Positions 4,403 to 24,703 of a stretch of 64,000 bases of DNA are shown one piece after another. How positions within the stretch are numbered: the stretch's first letter is position 1; each line of letters starts with the position of its first letter. The notes under the pieces are model-generated. The model saw nothing but the letters and a program-made list of their open reading frames with translations. It was not told where the DNA came from and made no database searches. This DNA is from Adineta vaga (taxonomy: Eukaryota > Animalia > Rotifera), in contig CP075496.1 of NCBI GenBank assembly GCA_021613535.1, positions 13,640,001 to 13,704,000 on the forward strand, read 5' to 3'. Made by a program: the position numbers and the translations under genes.

Positions 4403-7399
4403 ATGAAGTGGAAGGTCTTATTAGCAAGTTTAATTCTTTTTCTTGGTCTTTCAACTATTCATTGTAAAGTAGTAAAAAACAATGAACGAAAAGAGTTCAA
4501 AGGTGGTAATCATGTTCTTGAGAATGGTCGAATTATCTCGACACCTGTAAGTTTTCTTTACATTGTTATACTTTTATAAATACTGATATTTAACTTTTAA
4601 AGGCGTTAGGATCAATGCCGGTCGATCAAATATCAGCATCTAATTTACAACAAGATGATTATAATCGAGCTAATCTTCCCTATGTTGCATATGGTGACAT
4701 TCTTGTTCCAAAAGAAGAAATTGAATCTTTAGGATTTAAACGGTAGATTTCTTGTTCATAATACTGTTTTTATGTCATTCGCTTTTTTTCTCTCGTCATT
4801 TTAATAAATAGAACTAAACGAAAAGTTATAGCTGAAACCAATCGTTTCGGTTCCAGTAATCGATGGCCTGGTGGTGTTGTTCCTTATGATTTTCTTTCAA
4901 ACATTGGTGAGATATTCATAATAAAAAACAAATCGAATCTATTCTGTTTCATTAAAAACTAGATGATCGAGTACGACAAAAAGTATTGCGAGCAATTCAA
5001 CACTGGCATCAACGTACATGCATTCGTTTTGAACCCTATAATCCACAACGTCACTGGGATATAAGTGCAAAAATTACTATTGAAGATAGAGGATCTGGGT
5101 AGGTATTTCTCTATTGAAATGTGAAATTTCTATGAATAATATTTTTTCAAGATGTGCAACATTTGTTGGCTATCGAGCATCGTCTAATATTCCAACATCT
5201 TATTCAGTTTATTTACCACTTCAATGTTCACTTGGTTCAGCTATCCATGAATTAGGACATGTTATTGGTTTTTATCATGAAATGGCACGAACAGATCGTG
5301 ATCAAGAAATTCTATTAAACTTTAATTTAATGTCAACAACTGATGCAATTCAATATAACATAATGCCTAATCCAATGCCTGGTTATTATGGTCAACCATA
5401 TGATCTTGGTTCGATTATGCAATATTATCCAACAGTAAATAATGTTAAAGAGTCAATTGAAAACTAAACAAATGATTTATTGTAGGATGTAATGAATTCT
5501 CGTGATAGTCGACGTACTTTTCTAATGGGTCAACGTGATGCACTCTCGTATTTGGATGCTAAACTAGCAAATTTAGCCTATCATTGTAGTGATAAATGTT
5601 CGTCACCACCCGATTGCTATAATGAAGGTTATATAGATCAATCTTGTCAATGTATTTGTCCTGATGGTTTTTATGGTAAACAATGTGATCGTTTAGAAGG
5701 TTACTCAGGTACAAAACAATCATTCCTAGATATCTAACAATATTTGTTTTGAATAAATCTTTTGTAGCAGAAAGAAAACTTGCACCTGCGACAACTGAAA
5801 CACCTGAAACAACTTCATCACCATCACCCACAACAACAACAACGGCAACAACAATAACAAAAACAACAGCAACAACAACAACAACAACAGAAACATCAAG
5901 TAAATTTGTATTTTATTCCTTTCATATTCATTTTTTTGAATTAATAACAGCTGATCTTCATTGGCTGGAATGGAGTGAATGGTCAAATTGTAGTGAATCA
6001 TGTGGTAGTGGTATTCGTGTTCGAACTCGTCTATGTTCTAATACAACTATTCAAGGCAGTACTAATCCGTGTACAGCATTAGGTGGTGATTCATTTCAAA
6101 TTGAATCATGTCAAAATCCTGAATGTAATCGTATGTATCGAAATTCTTTCGGATATTTCTTGTAAATCTTTTCGTTTATTTAGAAGCGGATATTCTTCTA
6201 AGTTGTACATTTGATCTTGCTGATGAAAAATGTCCATTGAAAAGTACAGATCAGTTACAAATTGAAAAAGGCAAACAAACAGATCAACTTCGACCTATTA
6301 ATGATCATACACGTGGAGGTAAATGAGAACGATTGATTTTTGTTTTTTCTTGAATAATTCTTCTTTGTTTATAATAGATGGAAAATATCTTCTTCTCATT
6401 CCCAATACCGATCAATCCGATTCTGTTCAATCATTTGAATTAGGTGAATTTTCTCGTTCGGAAAAGAATCATTGTTTACAATTTTGGTATTCAATTAATG
6501 GAAAAGCAATTGGTAAATTAATCATTCTAAAAAATAATACGATTAATTTTACATTAACATTTGATGGACAAAATCGAGGTAGATTTCTTTGAATATTGAA
6601 AGTATGTTTAAGAATTTCAAATTCTACAGATACAAATTGGAAATCAATCGAACAATTAATTTCAGCTGATGATGATTATAAAGTTATTTTGGAATATAAA
6701 TCAAATTCAACAGAAGAAAGTTATATTGCAATTGATGATATTAGTATTATTAATGGTACTTGTCGTATGTATTCAGAAAAAAAAGCAAATAAATTTAAAA
6801 GTATTATGATTTTTCTATTCATAGCTTCGAATAAAATCGATAATCAACAACGTCGAAAACGTAGACAAACAAGTAGAAGTAAGAATTGATTGACTTTCTG
6901 ATAATAGAACTATCTAATATCGACACTTTCTCTTACAAATTAAATACTTTCTTTTATTTCTCTAATTATAGGTATAGGTTGTAGTCGTGTTATCAATCTA
7001 TCACAAACAAATCGAGAAGCATCATTAACATCACCAAATTATCCAAATTTATATCCATCAAATGTACAATGTTATTATTATATAATAGCACCATCATCAA
7101 GTCGTGTCGTACTTGAATTTACTGATTTTAATGTACCTACTTCGAATAGAAATGATTGTGATGATACAATTGAAGTTCGTTATTATCATCTCGGTATGTA
7201 TTATTGAATGTTATTTAAATCATTATTTCAATCGAATATATACTTTCAAGGTCAACCAGGTCCTCGATATTGTGGAACAGGTGCAAATTCGAATAATCTT
7301 CGATATCTAAGTACAAATAATTATATTATGCTCGTGTTTCGATCCAATGAACTTTATGCTGGTCGAGGTTTTCGTGCACAGGCAAAACTTTCTTCATAA
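4403..7399 (+). CDS. Astacin (M12A) zinc metalloprotease with EGF, Thr-rich linker, TSP1, MAM and CUB domains
   Basis: Signal peptide MKWKVLL; HELGHVIGFYHEMARTDRD zinc motif; Met-turn SIMQY; CYNEGYID..CQCICPDGFYG (EGF); WSEWSNCSESCGSG (TSP1); CLQFWY and IAIDDISI (MAM); TSPNYP..Y and GRGFRA (CUB). Multiple short introns. Confidence 0.92.
5828..5889 (+). repeat. Imperfect (ACA)n coding repeat (Thr-rich mucin-like linker)
   Basis: acaacaacaacaacggcaacaacaataaca... inside an astacin exon. Confidence 0.85.
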
Positions 7400-17400: not shown

Positions 17401-20378
17401 TTGATATAGAAGTGGTCACTTGGTCGAATTGATTAATAATTTTCGAGCAAGCAAACTGACGACGACGACCTTCGTCTAAAGTTTTTTGGTGGCGGAAGAA
17501 AAGAAGAGGAAAGACAAAGATTGTTATTCGCTCACGTACATACACATACATACATCCATATATTCTCTTCATATCCATATCGGCGAAGAAACGTACAATA
17601 TACATTCATCTATTATATTCATTCTTTTCAAATCGATATTTTACATATATATATATATATTTCAATGTATTATTCTCTGGGTTCACGAAGGTAATATTTC
17701 AAAGAAGAAAAAAACGCTTCGAAATATTTCCTTGAAGAGAATATGACCTGATTTAATCCGAAAAAAATTCTTTCAACAAAATGCGACTCATTCAATTCAA
17801 TAGTGGTCTTCGTGTTGTATTGAAAGATGTTCAACAACAACAACAAACTGACCCATTACCAAGATATTATCTTGCTCCTCCATTACAACCACCTCCACAT
17901 CATTCATCGAATACATCGATAGCTACCACAAGTTCATCAAGTAAATCAAATATTTCAATAAATACAAATCATGAATATTATATACATCGACAATATCTTT
18001 CATCCACACATTCAACAAATTGTCAGACATCTAATCCAGTAAAAACACCACCCGTATTGAATCCAATACCATCATCAACGCTTACCGTCGAGGTAGGAAT
18101 AAGTCAAACTCTACACGATGTACAATGAAAATAACACGTACACATCTCTAAGTTGTTGTGTGTGTGTGTGTGTGTGTCATCTATTTATTCAAAAGCTTGA
18201 CACGTGTACAGATGTTTGACCTTCTTTACATTTAACTTACATTATAAATCAACGAAGCACATCTTTATTCTAAAAAGGCATACCATATATACTTATGTAA
18301 TTTATACCGACTTGTTTCCTCTTCTTCTTCTTCTTCTTCGTTGTCACCCCTATTAGTAAAGTAAGATGATGTAATAATGATCGGATTCTTTTCCCTGAAG
18401 GCGACATGAAGTGAAAGTAAGTAGATGTGCGTGTGTATGTTCAATCTAAAAAGAATTAAATAATCTGTCTGAGAAAAATGACGATTATATGTGTATGTTT
18501 TTTTCATGTAGAATCGACGAGACAAAAGCGATTCGGGCCATGTCAATATTCGTGATGATGATGAAGGACATTTGATTTATGTTCCAGGTAAATTTATCTA
18601 TTATAATTTTATTGAAAAAAAAAACTTTATTAATTCTTCTTTTAGGTGATATTTTACATCATCAATGTAAGTACGATTTTGTCCTAGTTCAGTTGTTCAC
18701 ATATTAACATCATTTTATCAGAAATAATATTTTGATTGATGAAGAGAGAATTCATTGTTGATAGCCTTTAGCAAATGATTGATAATTGAGTAGTTGAAAT
18801 ATGAAAATTATAATTGATTAATGAGTATATGTTCTTTTGGATAATAGTATAGACATTGATTTTCATCTGATAACTTTATCTCTATATTATAATAATAAAT
18901 CAAACGAAAACATGTTTATTGATTTATCACTTCAATTAGTGATGAGATATTCAATCGATATCGATGTATGAGAATTGAATAAATATATATTTAGATGAAA
19001 TTCGACGAACACTTGGCGAAGGTACATTTGGCAAAGTTGTAGAAGTTCGTGATCTTCGCGGGTAAGAAGAAATTTACAAGATTTTTATTGATAAAAATGT
19101 TCGATTTTGAATCATTTAAGTGATGGTAATAGACGTTTAGCATTGAAAATTATAAAAAATGTTGAAAAATATCGTGAAGCGGCCCGGTTAGAAATCAATG
19201 TACTTAAAACAATCAATGAAAAAGATCCCGATGGTGTTAAGTAAGTTTAAATTAACTTCTACAAACAAAAAATGAAACATTCTTCTTTAGTTTATGTGTT
19301 GCATTACTTGATTCATTTGATTATTATGGTCATATCTGTATTGCTTTTAATATGTTAGGTTTAAGTGTATTTGATTTTTTAAAAGAAAATAATTATATCC
19401 CATATCCAATTGATCAAGTGCGTCATATTTCATATCAATTATGTCTTGCTGTTAAATTTCTTCATGACATTGCATTAACACATACAGATTTAAAAGTAAG
19501 AAGAACAAAATATTGAATATTTCATAATCGATTCCCTTTTTTAGCCTGAAAATATTCTTTTTGTGAATTCGGAATATAATGTTGTATTTAATCATCGAAA
19601 AGTAGGTTTTATTTTGTTAATAAAAGAAGTAAAATGTTGTTTTTGAAGAGAAGAGATGAACGTGTCGTACGTCAAACTGATATTAAAGTCATTGATTTCG
19701 GTTCTGCAACATTCGATTGGGAACATCATTCAACAATTGTTTCAACTCGACATTATCGTGCACCTGAAGTTATTCTCGAATTAGGTTGGTCTCAACCATG
19801 TGATGTTTGGAGTATTGGTTGTATTCTTTTTGAACTTTATCTTGGTTTTACACTTTTTCAAGTAAATTCAATTCAATTCTTTGTTTTTGAAGAAAAAAAA
19901 TAACTTATTTGTTTAGACACATGATAATAAAGAACATTTAGCCATGATGGAACGTATCCTTGGTTCTATTCCATATCGAATGGCAAAACAATCAAAGTAA
20001 AAAGAAAAAAATTCAGAAGATTTTGAAATAAATGAATTTTTTTAGGAAAACGAAATATTTCTATCATGGTCGACTGGATTGGGATGAACGTAGTTCAGCT
20101 GGTCGTTATGTACGCGATAATTGTAAACCATTAAGGGTAAAGATGAATCTTTCGAAAAGAAATATCTATTAAAATTCTTTTCTCTTTAGCGTTATATGAT
20201 GAGTGACGAACAAGATCATCAACAATTATTTGAATTAATTGAAAAAATGCTTGAATATGATCCAAAACGACGAATAACCTTAACTGAGTCTCTTCGACAT
20301 CCATTTTTTGAACGTCTTTTACCAGAACAGCGTATTAGCGAACTTCCTCCAATCGTCAATACAACTTCCAAGTCTTGA
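11444..20378 (+). CDS. CLK: CLK/Doa LAMMER dual-specificity kinase with alternative N-terminal exons
   Basis: RS/His-rich first exon, [60 protein letters not shown]; stop at 20376-20378. Includes a 21-nt micro-exon at 18646-18666. Confidence 0.95.
18157..18177. repeat. (TG)n microsatellite in a CLK intron
   Basis: About 10 TG units seen directly. Confidence 0.9.
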
Positions 20379-20820
20379 TAGTGTTTATCTTGTGTGATAT
20401 ATATTTAACATATATCCTTTCTTTCTATATAAATATATCTGAGGAAATAAAAAACAAAAACTACGTAGAGAAGAGAAATCTAATCGAATATTGGTGTCGC
20501 TTTTTGTTTCTCTTTTTGTGCATGTTCTCTTTTTCTTTTTGTTGTATTACTTTTTCTTCTATTTGTACTGCTATGATGATGAATTATGATTGAAAAAAAA
20601 GAAAACAAACAAGAAAGATAAAGACATTAAAATACAGACCAAACAATTGTTTCCTTCTTTTTCTTCATTCTTTTTTGCTTGTTATCTTTTCATGTAATTC
20701 TCTACTTCTCTTCGTTTTTTCTGTATCCGTCCGGCTAAATATCAAGTTAGCCAGAGAGGATGAGTAAAAAAAAAGAAATCACAAATTAGACAAAAATAAC
20801 TCTTATGTACATACATATAC

Positions 20821-20840
20821 ATATATATATATATATATAT
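20821..20840. repeat. (AT)10 microsatellite
   Basis: Seen directly; similar (AT)n runs occur near 7843, 31742, 58266, 58441 and 63220. Confidence 0.9.
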
Positions 20841-20868
20841 AAACAGATCACTTTTTACAGATTAAATA

Positions 20869-22386
20869 ATGGTTCGCATTGCAGTTTTGGGTTGTGGAAC
20901 TATGGGTTTGAAAATTGCAGGTTTATATCTTCGATTTGATTGTTTATTATTGATCGATTTTTCTTTGTTTCATAGGCAATTTCGCCTATTATGGTCATAT
21001 TGTAAAGATTTTCGATAGTGATTTAAGACAATTGGATAGTGCATGTGAGCGTATTCATCATGATGAAGATCAATTATATCGTGATGGACTTATTGAAATG
21101 CCGAAATTTTTAGTGAGTTTTTTATCTACAAAATCTTCAAATTTCTTTCTTTTTCCATCAGGGTCAAATCTTATGTTTAAATCGTCTTGAAGATGCTGTT
21201 AAAGATGTGGAATTTATTTTCGAATGTATTGTTGAAAATCTAGAACTAAAACAATCATTAATTGAAAGTAGGAATTTTCATGCAAAGAAAATTAGGTTAA
21301 ACAAGAACAGCCTCTTTTTACTTACCTATAGAATGACATACTTTTCAGGTCAGTTTTAACCGATATAATTTTCTTCATTATTCGAGAGAAACGAAAAAAA
21401 GACGATGAATACTTTTATCATAAGGAGTCGACTTTCTACTAGAAAAAAAAAGAATAATTTTAAACTGTCGTCATCAAGAACTCCATTTTCAAAATAAAGA
21501 ACGAAAAAATTAGGTCAAAAAAAATAAATTGTTCTACTTTTCTATTTTTAAGAAGCTGCTCAATCCGCTCCAGCAGATGCTATCATATGCTCAAATACAA
21601 TGCGATTAGATTTAGACAAAATATCGGAAAATCTTCTTCATAAAGAAGTAAATTGATCTTTAGTATTTCTAATTATCCATTAGAAGAAAAATTGTTCAAT
21701 TTAGAATTTTCTTGGAGCACGATTTTTGTATCCCGTATATTATGTATCGGAAGTTGAACTCAATCCAAGTATTTCAACAAGTACACAAACAATCAGTGCT
21801 TGTATGGAAATTCTATTCGTAATTTTCATTGATTAAACTTTCATTTTTTTTAGTAAGAAAATTACTTGAACAGATGGATAAAGTTTTGTACTTTCGTTCA
21901 ACAATGGATCCATTGATTCTCGATGAAGAACAACGTGAAACAAGACGAAAAGGTATTTTTTTTATGGACAAAGAATTTTCAATTGATAATGAATATTTCA
22001 TTTAGCTCGTATTGAACAATTGAAAAAAAGTAGTGGAATTATGGTTGTTCGTGGTCGAACATTACCTGAATTATCATCATCATCACATCGAACTGGTGGT
22101 CATGGTGGAACTCGTAGTGATTTAAGTAAATAATTCAAAACAATATTTTTTCGTTGTTTACAATTAATTTCTTTTAGTTGATAGTGCAACTAATGGAAAT
22201 AATAATTCTTTGGCTAATGAAAATGTTGATTGTTCAATTTGTATGGATCGTCCACGAAATTCTGTTATACGTTCATGTAATCATTTTGTTACATGTTATG
22301 AATGTGCACGTCTTCTATATAATCGAAAAGATCCATGTCCAGTTTGTCGAAAACGTATTGATGATGTTATTCGTGTATATACATGA
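20869..22386 (+). CDS. 3-hydroxyacyl-CoA dehydrogenase-like NAD-binding domain fused to a C-terminal C3HC4 RING finger
   Basis: Eight exons splice in frame. MVRIAVLGCGTMG (GxGxxG), FIFECIVENLELKQ, AIICSNT, FLGARFLYPVYY..EVE; ends CSICMDRPRNSVIRSCNHFVTCYECARLL....CPVCRKRIDDVIRVYT*. Not shown by the ORF track because exons are short. Confidence 0.88.
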
Positions 22387-22789
22387 AAAATTTTCTTATT
22401 TTAATATTGTACGTCGTGTGTCAGATGTATTGTGATATAGAACCACTTTTTTTTTGAATATTTTATAAATATAAATATTATTATATCGATGTATTATGCT
22501 TTGAATCTATTTTAGAGATTATACAAAGAGTTTTATTCTTTTTTTCTGTCTTTTCATAATGATCGAATTAAAACAATCATCATATTGGTAAGTCTTTTTC
22601 AGACATGATGAAGAGTATAGAAACATAAAAATACTGTCGAAAAGATAATAGATATAAAAATGTTCGAGAATTGATGGCAAAAATCTGACCTATTTCTATA
22701 TTAAAACTAGAGCATGTTTGCGTATGTTAGTCTTATCTATGCATTTGGTCTTTCAACCCCCTTTAAAGAAAGTAAATAGACTCGACTAG

Positions 22790-22797
22790 TATATAAA
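22790..22797 (+). promoter_or_regulatory. Possible TATA box upstream of the CDP-transferase fusion gene
   Basis: TATATAAA ~65 nt before ATG 22859; weak evidence in AT-rich DNA. Confidence 0.25.
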
Positions 22798-22858
22798 GAT
22801 CTTCTCATTTGAAATATTTTCATACTAATACCCATACCTTAAAATAAAATACTGAGAA

Positions 22859-24703
22859 ATGACAAATCAAACTCTTAATATACATTTTCGTATGTATTTA
22901 TAAACGTTGTTTTTCTTCCTATAAATATTTTTTTAATTTATATTATTTCCTCTAGGTTTTCAAGGATTATTATCGATAGTTCAATGGTTTCTCAATCTTT
23001 TGATAACAATCAATCAGATTATGACATCATTTATGTTTCATCTGGTGATTTGGTACGATTTATATGTATATACACCATTACAAATGTACCTTTCACCACA
23101 TATGGCTCACATTCCACGTGTTATTCAAATTGGAAATAAAACTATTACTGTATTCAATGCTAATATTGTCACTTATTCACGAACACTTCTTATTATTCCA
23201 ATTGCATGGTGTTTAAAGTAAGTTTTAATCTTAAATTTTCTTGAAAATGTTCATAAATATTCATTTGTATTTAGATTCAATCATCCAATCTCTGCTTGTT
23301 TATTAGTATTATTTCATGATTTTCTTGATCATATTGATGGAATTGTTGCTAAAGTTCATAAACGTATCTATGGTGATAATATTGATGATCCATTATTAGG
23401 CGGTTTTATGGATGCATTTTGCGATAAAATTGTTAATGTTTTCTGTCTTTGGACAATTATACAAGAAACACATTTCGAACAAACATCAACTTTATTTACA
23501 ATGTTATTTGTACTTCTTTGTTATACAATCATTGCACTTGAAACAGCAATTGGTATTGTACGAGTACAAGATTATTTTCATGCTGCTCTTCTTGGAAATA
23601 AGTATAATATTAATTCAACATCTGCTGTTATGGAAGGAAAATTAAAAGAAAAACTTGAATCAATTGGATTAGCATTTTTATGTTTATCAACTGATTATCT
23701 TTCACCATTTGAACATTGGTGTAAGTAAACGAATTCATTTGTTTTATTTATTCTATTCAATTAATCTTATTTAATGATTTATTTTTAGCTGGAATATCTG
23801 GTGTCCTTTGTTTTGCATTAACAATTCGATTAGCATATATTTCTTTAATGAAGAAATTACAAGCACGACAAATAAATGATGAAAAAAAGAAAAGTGTTAC
23901 TATTAATGAACAAATCTGTGAAATTGAAATACCTGTTCAAAAATCAATTGCAGTTATGAATTCATTGAATTTAACAAATGTTACAAAAACACGTCAACGA
24001 GCAATGACAGTCAATTCATCACGAGAAGAAGTATGTGTTCTTTTGAAATGATTTTATATGAATTTTTTCTATCTTTTTTCTTTAATTATAGAATGAAAAA
24101 ATGAAACGTATAAGTTTTTCATCATCTAATGATTCTGAAGATGAAACAAATGAACGTCAAAGTTCAAACTCATCATCATCATCTGAAATTCATAATGAAT
24201 CTTCACCTGTCTATCAACGTAGTGCATCATTACCATCTATTTGGATTGATGGTCGTGCTGATAAAGTTTACACTGTTGGTTGTTTTGATTTATTTCATGA
24301 AGGTCATCGTCTTCTTCTTCAACGTATGAGACAATATGGTCGTCAAGTTATTGTTGGTGTACATGATAGTCGTAGTATTCATAAATTAAAGAAACGTGTA
24401 CCTGTTGATGGAACTGAAACACGTATGTTGAATGTTAAACGATATGCAGATGAAGTTTATTGTGTTGCTGGTACAGATCCATCAAATTTTGTTAAATGTA
24501 TTGTACATTTACGTGAAAATGAAACAGCTGTTTATATACGCGGTGATGATATGGCCGACTTTCCATGTCGTGATATTGTCGAAGAATTAATGCCAGTTAA
24601 ATTTCTACCGTATACAAGTGGTGTTTCGAGTACACAATTACGCAAAGAATTATTTTCACATATTCAAGCAGATGATATAGAACATTTAGAAAAAGTAAAT
24701 TGA
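22859..24703 (+). CDS. Bifunctional CDP-alcohol phosphotransferase (N-terminal, membrane) + TagD/glycerol-3-phosphate cytidylyltransferase-like domain (C-terminal)
   Basis: NANIVTYSR; DFLDHIDGIVAK...GGFMDAFCDK (DxxDGxxA(R/K)..GxxxDxxxD); C-terminal VYTVGCFDLFHEGH (HxGH), VIVGVHD, RGDD, LPYTSGVSSTQLR. Five exons join in frame. Confidence 0.88.

Follow-up and report, generated by a model that had tools for sequence, protein, structure and literature searches.

What can a RING-type ubiquitin ligase do with the nucleotide-binding domain of a 3-hydroxyacyl-CoA dehydrogenase (HAD) from which the catalytic residues have been lost? The question is raised by a gene of the bdelloid rotifer Adineta vaga, at positions 20869 to 22386 on the forward strand of a 64,000-nucleotide stretch of contig CP075496.1 (assembly GCA_021613535.1, positions 13,640,001 to 13,704,000), which is referred to here as the window. 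An original prediction, made from the sequence alone, had proposed for this gene a dead dehydrogenase domain, sensing NAD(H) or acyl-CoA, that is fused to a RING ubiquitin ligase (E3). We find that the two parts are encoded by one expressed mRNA, that the same architecture is found in about 130 animal proteins, and that these proteins retain most of the residues that contact the cofactor while those that contact the substrate are replaced, a pattern that would suit a domain that binds NAD(H) as a ligand and no longer catalyzes.

Results

One spliced mRNA encodes both domains

A gene model was built by reading the three forward frames of the window, which is AT-rich (30% G+C). It has eight exons and a coding sequence of 915 nt, 304 codons plus a stop, so that the size of approximately 280 residues given in the original prediction was an underestimate. 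All seven introns are bounded by GT and AG; six of them are 49 to 57 nt long, and intron 3 is 285 nt. The features of the gene are as follows.

20869..20920, + strand: exon 1, with the start codon, strand 1 and the GxGxxG loop (GCGTMG at 20890-20907); ends in phase 1
20976..21112, + strand: exon 2, with helix A, strand 2 ending in Asp31 (21014-21016, the Asp of IFD), and the invariant Asp47
21162..21267, + strand: exon 3, with the invariant Gly64, Glu84 (21222-21224), Glu88 and Lys93 (21249-21251)
21553..21647, + strand: exon 4, with the SNT motif followed by Met115 (21600-21602) at the position of the canonical catalytic Ser
21705..21801, + strand: exon 5, GARFLYPVYYVSEVE, in which the catalytic His is replaced by Arg136 (21720-21722) and Glu148 (21756-21758) is retained
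21854..21952, + strand: exon 6, which completes the NAD domain with its last helix and strand (MDKVLYFRS) and continues into the conserved PLILxEEQRExRK helix
22006..22125, + strand: exon 7, linker, predicted to be disordered, with a short conserved P-x-L motif (LPEL)
22178..22386, + strand: exon 8, with the end of the linker and the C3HC4 RING (22231-22383) ending VIRVYT; stop codon at 22384-22386
22387..22518 at least, + strand: 3' untranslated region (UTR), as far as the second contig record of run X1 reaches

Contigs of four public runs were aligned to window positions 20400 to 22800. Three of the runs, from three studies (X1, X5 and X6), are transcript-like, with about 0.36 to 0.45 of the sampled words present, which is the exon share, and their contigs contain all seven exon joints at the predicted places; in the DNA-like run X15 the introns are covered and none of the seven joints is present. 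A single 1057-base contig of X1 runs from exon 1 to position 22518 in the 3' UTR, and the Rossmann and RING parts therefore share one spliced mRNA, as the original prediction had supposed, and do not lie on separate transcripts. The joint between exons 1 and 2 (20920|20976) is present in the X1 contig. In X6 the gene is covered in two pieces. The gene is thus expressed as a single transcript that encodes both parts. The donor of exon 5 is at 21802, with the joint 21801|21854 present in three runs, and the in-frame CMEILF that follows it is therefore intron. A stronger-looking donor at 21819 (GTAATT) was considered and set aside: no in-frame acceptor fits it, the intron would be 35 to 39 nt long, and the transcripts use 21802. 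Coding differences among the runs, checked by hand, amount to two synonymous changes, one Val/Ile exchange, and a TGA stop codon that becomes TAA.

The X5 contig spans 20964 to 22436, starts inside intron 1, and retains intron 2; this retention (20964-21267) would give in-frame stop codons. It has small differences in common with the DNA run X15 (21130 A>T, 21131 A>C, and an additional T after 21149), and it may represent an intron-retaining isoform of a second allele or strain. Intron 3 (21268-21552) is five times the length of the other introns, and X15 has two variant contigs across 21257-21376. An Rfam scan of 20300-22900, which includes intron 3, returned chance-level matches only, below the gathering scores.

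The gene belongs to an ancient animal family

Similarity searches were run exon by exon, or with database orthologues as queries. The RING exon scores 56.6 bits on zf-C3HC4_3 (PF13920; E 2.3e-15, cut-off 27), in agreement with the placement of a RING ending VIRVYT at 22231-22383 in the original prediction. Matches to the Pfam NAD-binding domain 3HCDH_N (PF02737) are weak for exon 3 (E 4.6e-4, profile positions 70-97) and exon 4 (E 0.031, profile positions 102-129), and in a six-frame scan of the genome with PF02737 neighboring exon pieces sum to 25.6 bits; the best match of exon 3 in the PDB is lambda-crystallin, 3ADO. Exons 2, 5, 6, and 7 had no match in the per-exon Pfam and PDB searches, and exon 5 none in the PDB even at E 10, because they are too short, which is no argument against the homology seen in full-length orthologues. 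The orthologue of Adineta ricciae (P0278, 303 residues) scores 128.8 bits on 3HCDH_N.

When the RING exon alone was used in an exhaustive search, the best matches included full-length proteins with the same N-terminal sequence, for example those of Lymnaea stagnalis (CAL1533879.1; P0042) and Amphibalanus amphitrite (XP_043191083.1; P0032). About 130 family proteins were found by a word search with P0042 and by a profile search that used an alignment of 70 sequences; the full-length members are 280 to 330 residues long and combine PF02737 with PF13920, and the uncharacterized invertebrate homologues whose existence had been guessed at are therefore real. They come from Trichoplax, two corals, three Branchiostoma species, hemichordates, and echinoderms (for example LOC100892111 of S. 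purpuratus); from molluscs of all major classes, annelids, nemerteans, one brachiopod, and Macrostomum; from a priapulid, a pycnogonid, horseshoe crabs, mites, myriapods, and a barnacle; and, within the rotifers, from the monogonont Brachionus and the bdelloids A. ricciae and A. steineri. No vertebrate, insect, or nematode member was detected among the approximately 130 listed proteins, which is not proof of absence. In the word search with P0042 the family appears at E <1e-37, and the next matches are bacterial 3-hydroxybutyryl-CoA dehydrogenases that contain the C-terminal domain PF00725, at E ~1e-18. The family members scanned score 88 to 142 bits on PF02737 and 49 to 58 bits on PF13920, and PF00725 was found in none of the 14 members scanned for it, as expected if the helical C-terminal domain is absent from this architecture. 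In the ESM Atlas the 3HCDH_N-RING architecture forms one eukaryote-only cluster of 152 members.

The gene is an ordinary orthologue of this ancient, unnamed, and uncharacterized animal family. The names that its members carry are all automatic ("3-hydroxybutyryl-CoA dehydrogenase-like," "RING-type domain-containing protein," "peroxisomal multifunctional protein AIM1-like," "lambda-crystallin homolog"). A literature search for the 3HCDH_N-RING architecture and for five orthologue accessions returned nothing relevant and no characterized orthologue, consistent with the original prediction, in which no characterized protein was known to have this architecture. One member, from the millipede Chamberlinius hualienensis (P0275, 478 residues), is annotated with a PX domain in addition (PF00787), the result either of a further fusion or of the merging of gene models.

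The eight exon pieces tile P0278 in order with 90% identity overall, one residue being absent at each of the four phase-1 junctions, and the other three junctions, which are in phase 0, abutting; exon 1 is 100% identical to residues 1-17, exon 2 is 93% identical to residues 19-63, and exon 6 is 94% identical to residues 164-195. The window protein is 86 to 90% identical to the orthologues of A. ricciae and A. steineri, and its exon pieces tile about 40 other family members with 40 to 80% identity per exon. A metagenome contig with 46% G+C (L021) contains an orthologue with the same exon order. In a tree from a quick maximum-likelihood search only, which is to be taken as indicative, Adineta groups with Brachionus (Shimodaira-Hasegawa-like approximate likelihood ratio test, SH-aLRT, 97), the ambulacrarians, mites, cephalopods, and gastropods are recovered in what is roughly the species tree, and a long branch divides the family from four bacterial Hbd-type enzymes.

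No paralogue or ohnologue of exon 2 or of the RING exon was found in the gene's own genome. Exon 3 is only 43 to 52% identical to two 3HCDH_N loci of that genome, L005 (C3:8463290-8464002) and L006 (C6:7851160-7852214), which is more than to the genome's other 3HCDH_N loci. These two loci look like a canonical 3HCDH_N pair on two contigs with the same exon pattern, and they are probably ohnologues of each other. The canonical subfamily from which the RING-linked domain descends could not be assigned, since PaaH, MFP2, diketoreductase, HADH, and CRYL1 rank about level in the PDB, at 1e-10 to 1e-15; an origin from lambda-crystallin, suggested by one weak exon match, was dropped.

Cofactor contacts are retained and the catalytic center is replaced

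The residue pattern was read from an alignment in which 43 family members were set beside six canonical bacterial enzymes, with each exon piece entered as a fragment of its own, and from a wider set of 64 sequences to which corals, Trichoplax, and amphioxus were added. In Rossmann folds an Asp after strand 2 favors NAD over NADP. The NAD-binding domain PF02737 of the window protein has both GxGxxG and an acidic residue after strand 2, the GCGTMG and the Asp of IFD to which the original prediction had pointed being read in exons 1 and 2 as listed above. Across the family, G8, G10, and G13 of GxGxxG are kept, the column of the strand-2 Asp (D31) is Asp in 40 of 43 members and in all six canonical enzymes, Glu84 and Lys93 are each present in 43 of 43, and Asn113-Thr114 is kept. 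Residue Glu88, which is Glu or Asp in the family, aligns with Glu90 of the canonical enzymes, and Lys93 aligns with Lys95, both of which are contacts to the NAD ribose. In the Faecalibacterium prausnitzii enzyme the NAD contacts are Asp31, Glu90, Lys95, Asn115, and Ser117, the catalytic set is Ser117, His136, and Glu148, and the second domain contributes Asn186, by which the substrate is held (PMC11476959). In human HAD the proton is taken by His158, which is anchored by Glu170, and Asn208 of the dimerization domain packs on the substrate (PMC10988713).

Of these catalytic residues only the Glu is left. The column of the catalytic Ser (column 138) is Ser in all six canonical enzymes, Leu in 37 family members, and Met in six, and it is Met in the window copy. 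The column of the catalytic His (column 159) is His in all six canonical enzymes and Arg in all 43 family members and throughout the 64 rows of the wider set, so that the Arg of GARFLYP lies at 21720-21722 as the original prediction had it, and the His-to-Arg change, whose conservation it had left to be checked, is invariant. The Glu column (column 171, Glu148) is Glu in every sequence, including 43 of 43 family members, and is invariant in the 64. The GFxxNR segment with the substrate-holding Asn is a gap in 43 of 43 members, and from about residue 185 onward the canonical residues face linker and RING in the alignment. The absence of the His and of the C-terminal domain, to which the original prediction had pointed, is thus borne out for both, but the His is not the only residue concerned, as the Ser has become Met and the GFxxNR Asn has also gone. 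Across the family, then, the cofactor contacts are mostly kept and the substrate contacts are replaced.

The old active site carries a new invariant motif, RFLxPVYxIPEVE. Residues E84, K93, R136, L138, P140, V141, E146, and E148 are invariant in the 64 sequences, as are the eight zinc ligands and R261, P289, and R292 of the RING, and the window copy holds the family residue at every invariant column (D47, G64, E84, K93, R136, L138, P140, V141, E148, and the RING ligands included).

Predicted structure and the C-terminal RING

AlphaFold2 models of P0278 and of the best non-bdelloid match (P0233) each have a mean predicted local distance difference test (pLDDT) score of 87. The NAD domain, from residue 1 to about 205, is above 90, with the strand at 173-176 and the helix at 187-204 at 90 to 95, and in the P0278 model the linker (208-248) is below 50, and disordered, and the RING is confident; the Pro and Leu of the P-x-L motif of exon 7 are at least 90% conserved. 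In Foldseek searches about 182 residues superpose on the NAD+-bound Hbd structures 6AA8 and 9FBD at 1.8 to 2.1 Å, and the top matches are all HAD-family NAD domains.

The PDB sequences closest to the RING are those of cIAP1, cIAP2, MDM4, XIAP, and MDM2, in line with the IAP/MDM2 style first assigned to it. All eight zinc ligands are present in the C3HC4 order and spacing and are invariant in the family. The window RING reads CSIC...CPVCR, with an Ile after the first Cys that is conserved to 90% or more and a CPxCR whose Pro and Arg do not vary within the family; it has the residues at the positions that we take to contact the E2 ubiquitin-conjugating enzyme and, by our reading, the invariant Arg after the last Cys, which we take to be the place of the linchpin, would be the cationic linchpin. 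An aromatic residue lies near the C-terminal end of the RING, and in IAP and MDM2 proteins the tail aromatic supports the RING dimer and the donor ubiquitin. The role of the linchpin Arg, by which the closed E2~ubiquitin state is stabilized, has been described (PMC12326332), as has the RING dimer of cIAP1 (PMC6349121). Strand 1 stands at the very start of the protein and the RING at its very end; we see no space for a presequence, for a membrane span, or for a peroxisomal signal at the C terminus, and therefore infer that the protein is cytosolic or nuclear.

Purifying selection

The gene is under purifying selection. Compared with an Adineta-like contig that covers exons 6 to 8 (L020), the ratio of nonsynonymous to synonymous substitution rates (dN/dS) is 0.165 over 138 codons, with dS 0.44; the 51 residues of the RING show no amino acid change, with dS 0.48 for exon 8. 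In the comparison with the orthologue on L021, dN is 0.22 and dS is saturated.

Flanking DNA

Upstream of the gene is a (TA)n microsatellite at 20803-20851, followed at 20852-20859 by a polypyrimidine-CAG acceptor-like site 10 nt 5' of the ATG. The transcript contig of X1 begins near 20861, and the contigs of the upstream gene stop at 20774. Trans-splicing of a spliced leader is known in bdelloids and may take place at this site; letters of a leader were not seen. The upstream neighbor, on the + strand, has the last protein kinase subdomain at its end (20196-20378; Pkinase positions 233-263, E 1.2e-4), presumably of a CLK/DYRK-like kinase, and a 3' UTR that extends to about 20774. In L021 the gene directly downstream of the orthologue has a weak CDP-OH_P_transf match (4792-5091).

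Discussion

The gene model, expression, fold, residue pattern, conservation, and purifying selection described above lead us to favor, at somewhat better than even chances, an active-looking RING E3 in which a catalytically disabled, NAD(H)-binding HAD domain serves as a regulatory or substrate-choosing module, a reading drawn from sequence and from analogy with other systems. The gene would then encode a soluble RING-type ubiquitin ligase of 304 residues, of which residues 1 to about 205 form the NAD(H)-binding domain of the HAD fold with its dinucleotide-binding residues kept. The catalytic center has been dismantled by replacement of the Ser with Met or Leu and of the His with an invariant Arg, and by loss of the second-domain Asn together with the whole C-terminal substrate and dimerization domain, and the invariant Arg136 probably pairs with the retained Glu148. 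A conserved helix and a linker of about 45 residues, predicted to be disordered, lead from there to the C-terminal IAP/MDM2-type RING. In such a protein the N-terminal domain would bind NAD+ or NADH as a ligand and not as a cofactor, and the occupancy of the nucleotide site may alter the activity of the RING, perhaps via RING dimerization, or the recruitment of targets.

To judge by the residues kept, NAD(H) would be the likeliest ligand. Acyl-CoA sensing, which the original prediction had allowed beside it, looks less likely than NAD(H) binding because most NAD contacts are kept, whereas the Ser, His, and Asn that touch the substrate have been lost along with the cleft-closing second domain. 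Coupling of ligand to ligase is put forward as a hypothesis by analogy with RNF146 and Deltex and with dehydrogenase-fold sensors such as CtBP and NmrA. In its most specific form, in which the family is a ubiquitin ligase gated by NAD+/NADH, or by a related dinucleotide or metabolite, whose pocket is read by Arg136-Glu148 and switches RING activity or substrate capture, we propose it tentatively, as a possibility with the odds against it.

Several observations weigh against the favored reading. The Ser that bridges cofactor and substrate, itself one of the NAD contacts, is lost, and the affinity for NAD may therefore be low or the ligand may be a different one. The models are single chains without ligand, and the pairing of Arg136 with Glu148 comes from the alignment alone. 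The window copy is a somewhat diverged member of the family by its sequence, departing from the consensus at about 10 positions that are at least 90% conserved (R131N, L135A, G171D, T173V, G179T, and others). Moreover, the family-specific residues Arg136, Tyr142, Glu146, and Asp47 could form a new active site instead of a sensor pocket.

This last point leads to the alternative that the domain is still an enzyme, in which Arg136, Tyr142, and Glu146/Glu148 would be a new NAD-dependent catalytic set acting on a substrate that is not a CoA ester, with the RING controlling the turnover of the protein itself or tagging its partners. There are dehydrogenases in which Arg or Tyr can act as the acid/base; in the family the NAD contacts are conserved, and several residues peculiar to it near the former active site do not vary between Trichoplax and amphioxus, a degree of conservation beyond simple decay. 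Three of the four contacts to the substrate carbonyl are gone, however, as is the second domain that would close the cleft and supply Asn208 (PMC10988713), with no PF00725 in the members scanned, and the proposed Tyr142 is Phe in one of the 43 members, all of which makes this alternative improbable. If instead the Rossmann-like domain bound no nucleotide at all, it would be a folded module for protein-protein interaction or substrate recognition by the RING, a fate that would be in keeping with the frequent reuse of pseudoenzyme domains as scaffolds, with the loss of the Ser that bridges NAD and substrate, and with the drift of the window copy at several conserved positions. We regard this as rather unlikely, for the conservation of GxGxxG, the strand-2 Asp, Lys93, Glu/Asp88, and Asn113 over animal depth is hard to explain without a dinucleotide ligand. 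That the locus is an artefact, either two neighboring genes misjoined or a decaying pseudogene, might have been suspected from the weak per-exon 3HCDH_N scores and from the lack of a paralogue in its own genome, but it is refuted by spliced contigs of three studies that stay in frame between exon 1 and the 3' UTR, by independently annotated orthologues of the same length in many phyla, by the dN/dS of 0.165, and by the orthologue on L021.

Few RING ligases are known to be directly controlled by small metabolites, RNF146 and Deltex being the main examples, and in the present family an active-looking RING lies next to a domain whose fold and ligand chemistry are known, an arrangement conserved over most animal phyla. 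That none was detected in the standard model organisms may be the reason why the family has gone unstudied. If the NAD-gated reading is true, one protein would link redox or metabolic state to ubiquitination from Placozoa to amphioxus; NAD(H) or a related nucleotide would be a new input to ubiquitin signaling, and the family would be a clean example of an enzyme domain turned sensor. If the domain is still an enzyme, it would represent new chemistry on the HAD fold. The automatic names "3-hydroxybutyryl-CoA dehydrogenase-like," "AIM1-like," and "lambda-crystallin homolog" are misleading and should not be propagated.

Comparison with known systems

Comparators for the N-terminal domain are HADH, Hbd, PaaH, and CRYL1, which combine PF02737 with PF00725, have the same fold of the NAD domain, and match in sequence at E 1e-10 to 3e-15. 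The family has in common with them GxGxxG, the strand-2 Asp, Glu/Asp88, Lys93, Asn-Thr, and the Glu of the His-Glu pair, but differs in that it is without the C-terminal domain, has Leu or Met in place of the Ser and Arg in place of the His, lacks the Asn segment, and has added a RING. That RING resembles those of cIAP1/2, XIAP, and MDM2/MDM4 in its position at the extreme C terminus, in CPxCR with the putative linchpin Arg, and in the aromatic residue of its tail, though the family is without the BIR, p53-binding, or other known N-terminal modules of these proteins, and in bdelloids the tail ends in VYT, one residue short of the VYHS of the family.

The principle of a nucleotide-binding domain beside a RING is shared with RNF146, which has a WWE-RING arrangement and is activated by iso-ADP-ribose, and with Deltex, which has a RING-DTC arrangement and binds NAD+, and in both of these the binding of the ligand governs ubiquitin transfer (PMC10877565, PMC7500938). 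Their ligand domains have folds unrelated to that of the family, in which the coupling to a ligand is hypothetical. In CtBP, NmrA, and HSCARG/NMRAL1 a Rossmann domain keeps dinucleotide binding while catalysis is reduced or lost, and is used in signaling, but these proteins belong to different branches of the Rossmann superfamily and none of them is known to have a RING. Compared with these characterized systems, a RING E3 that carries the NAD domain of an apparently dead dehydrogenase is new.

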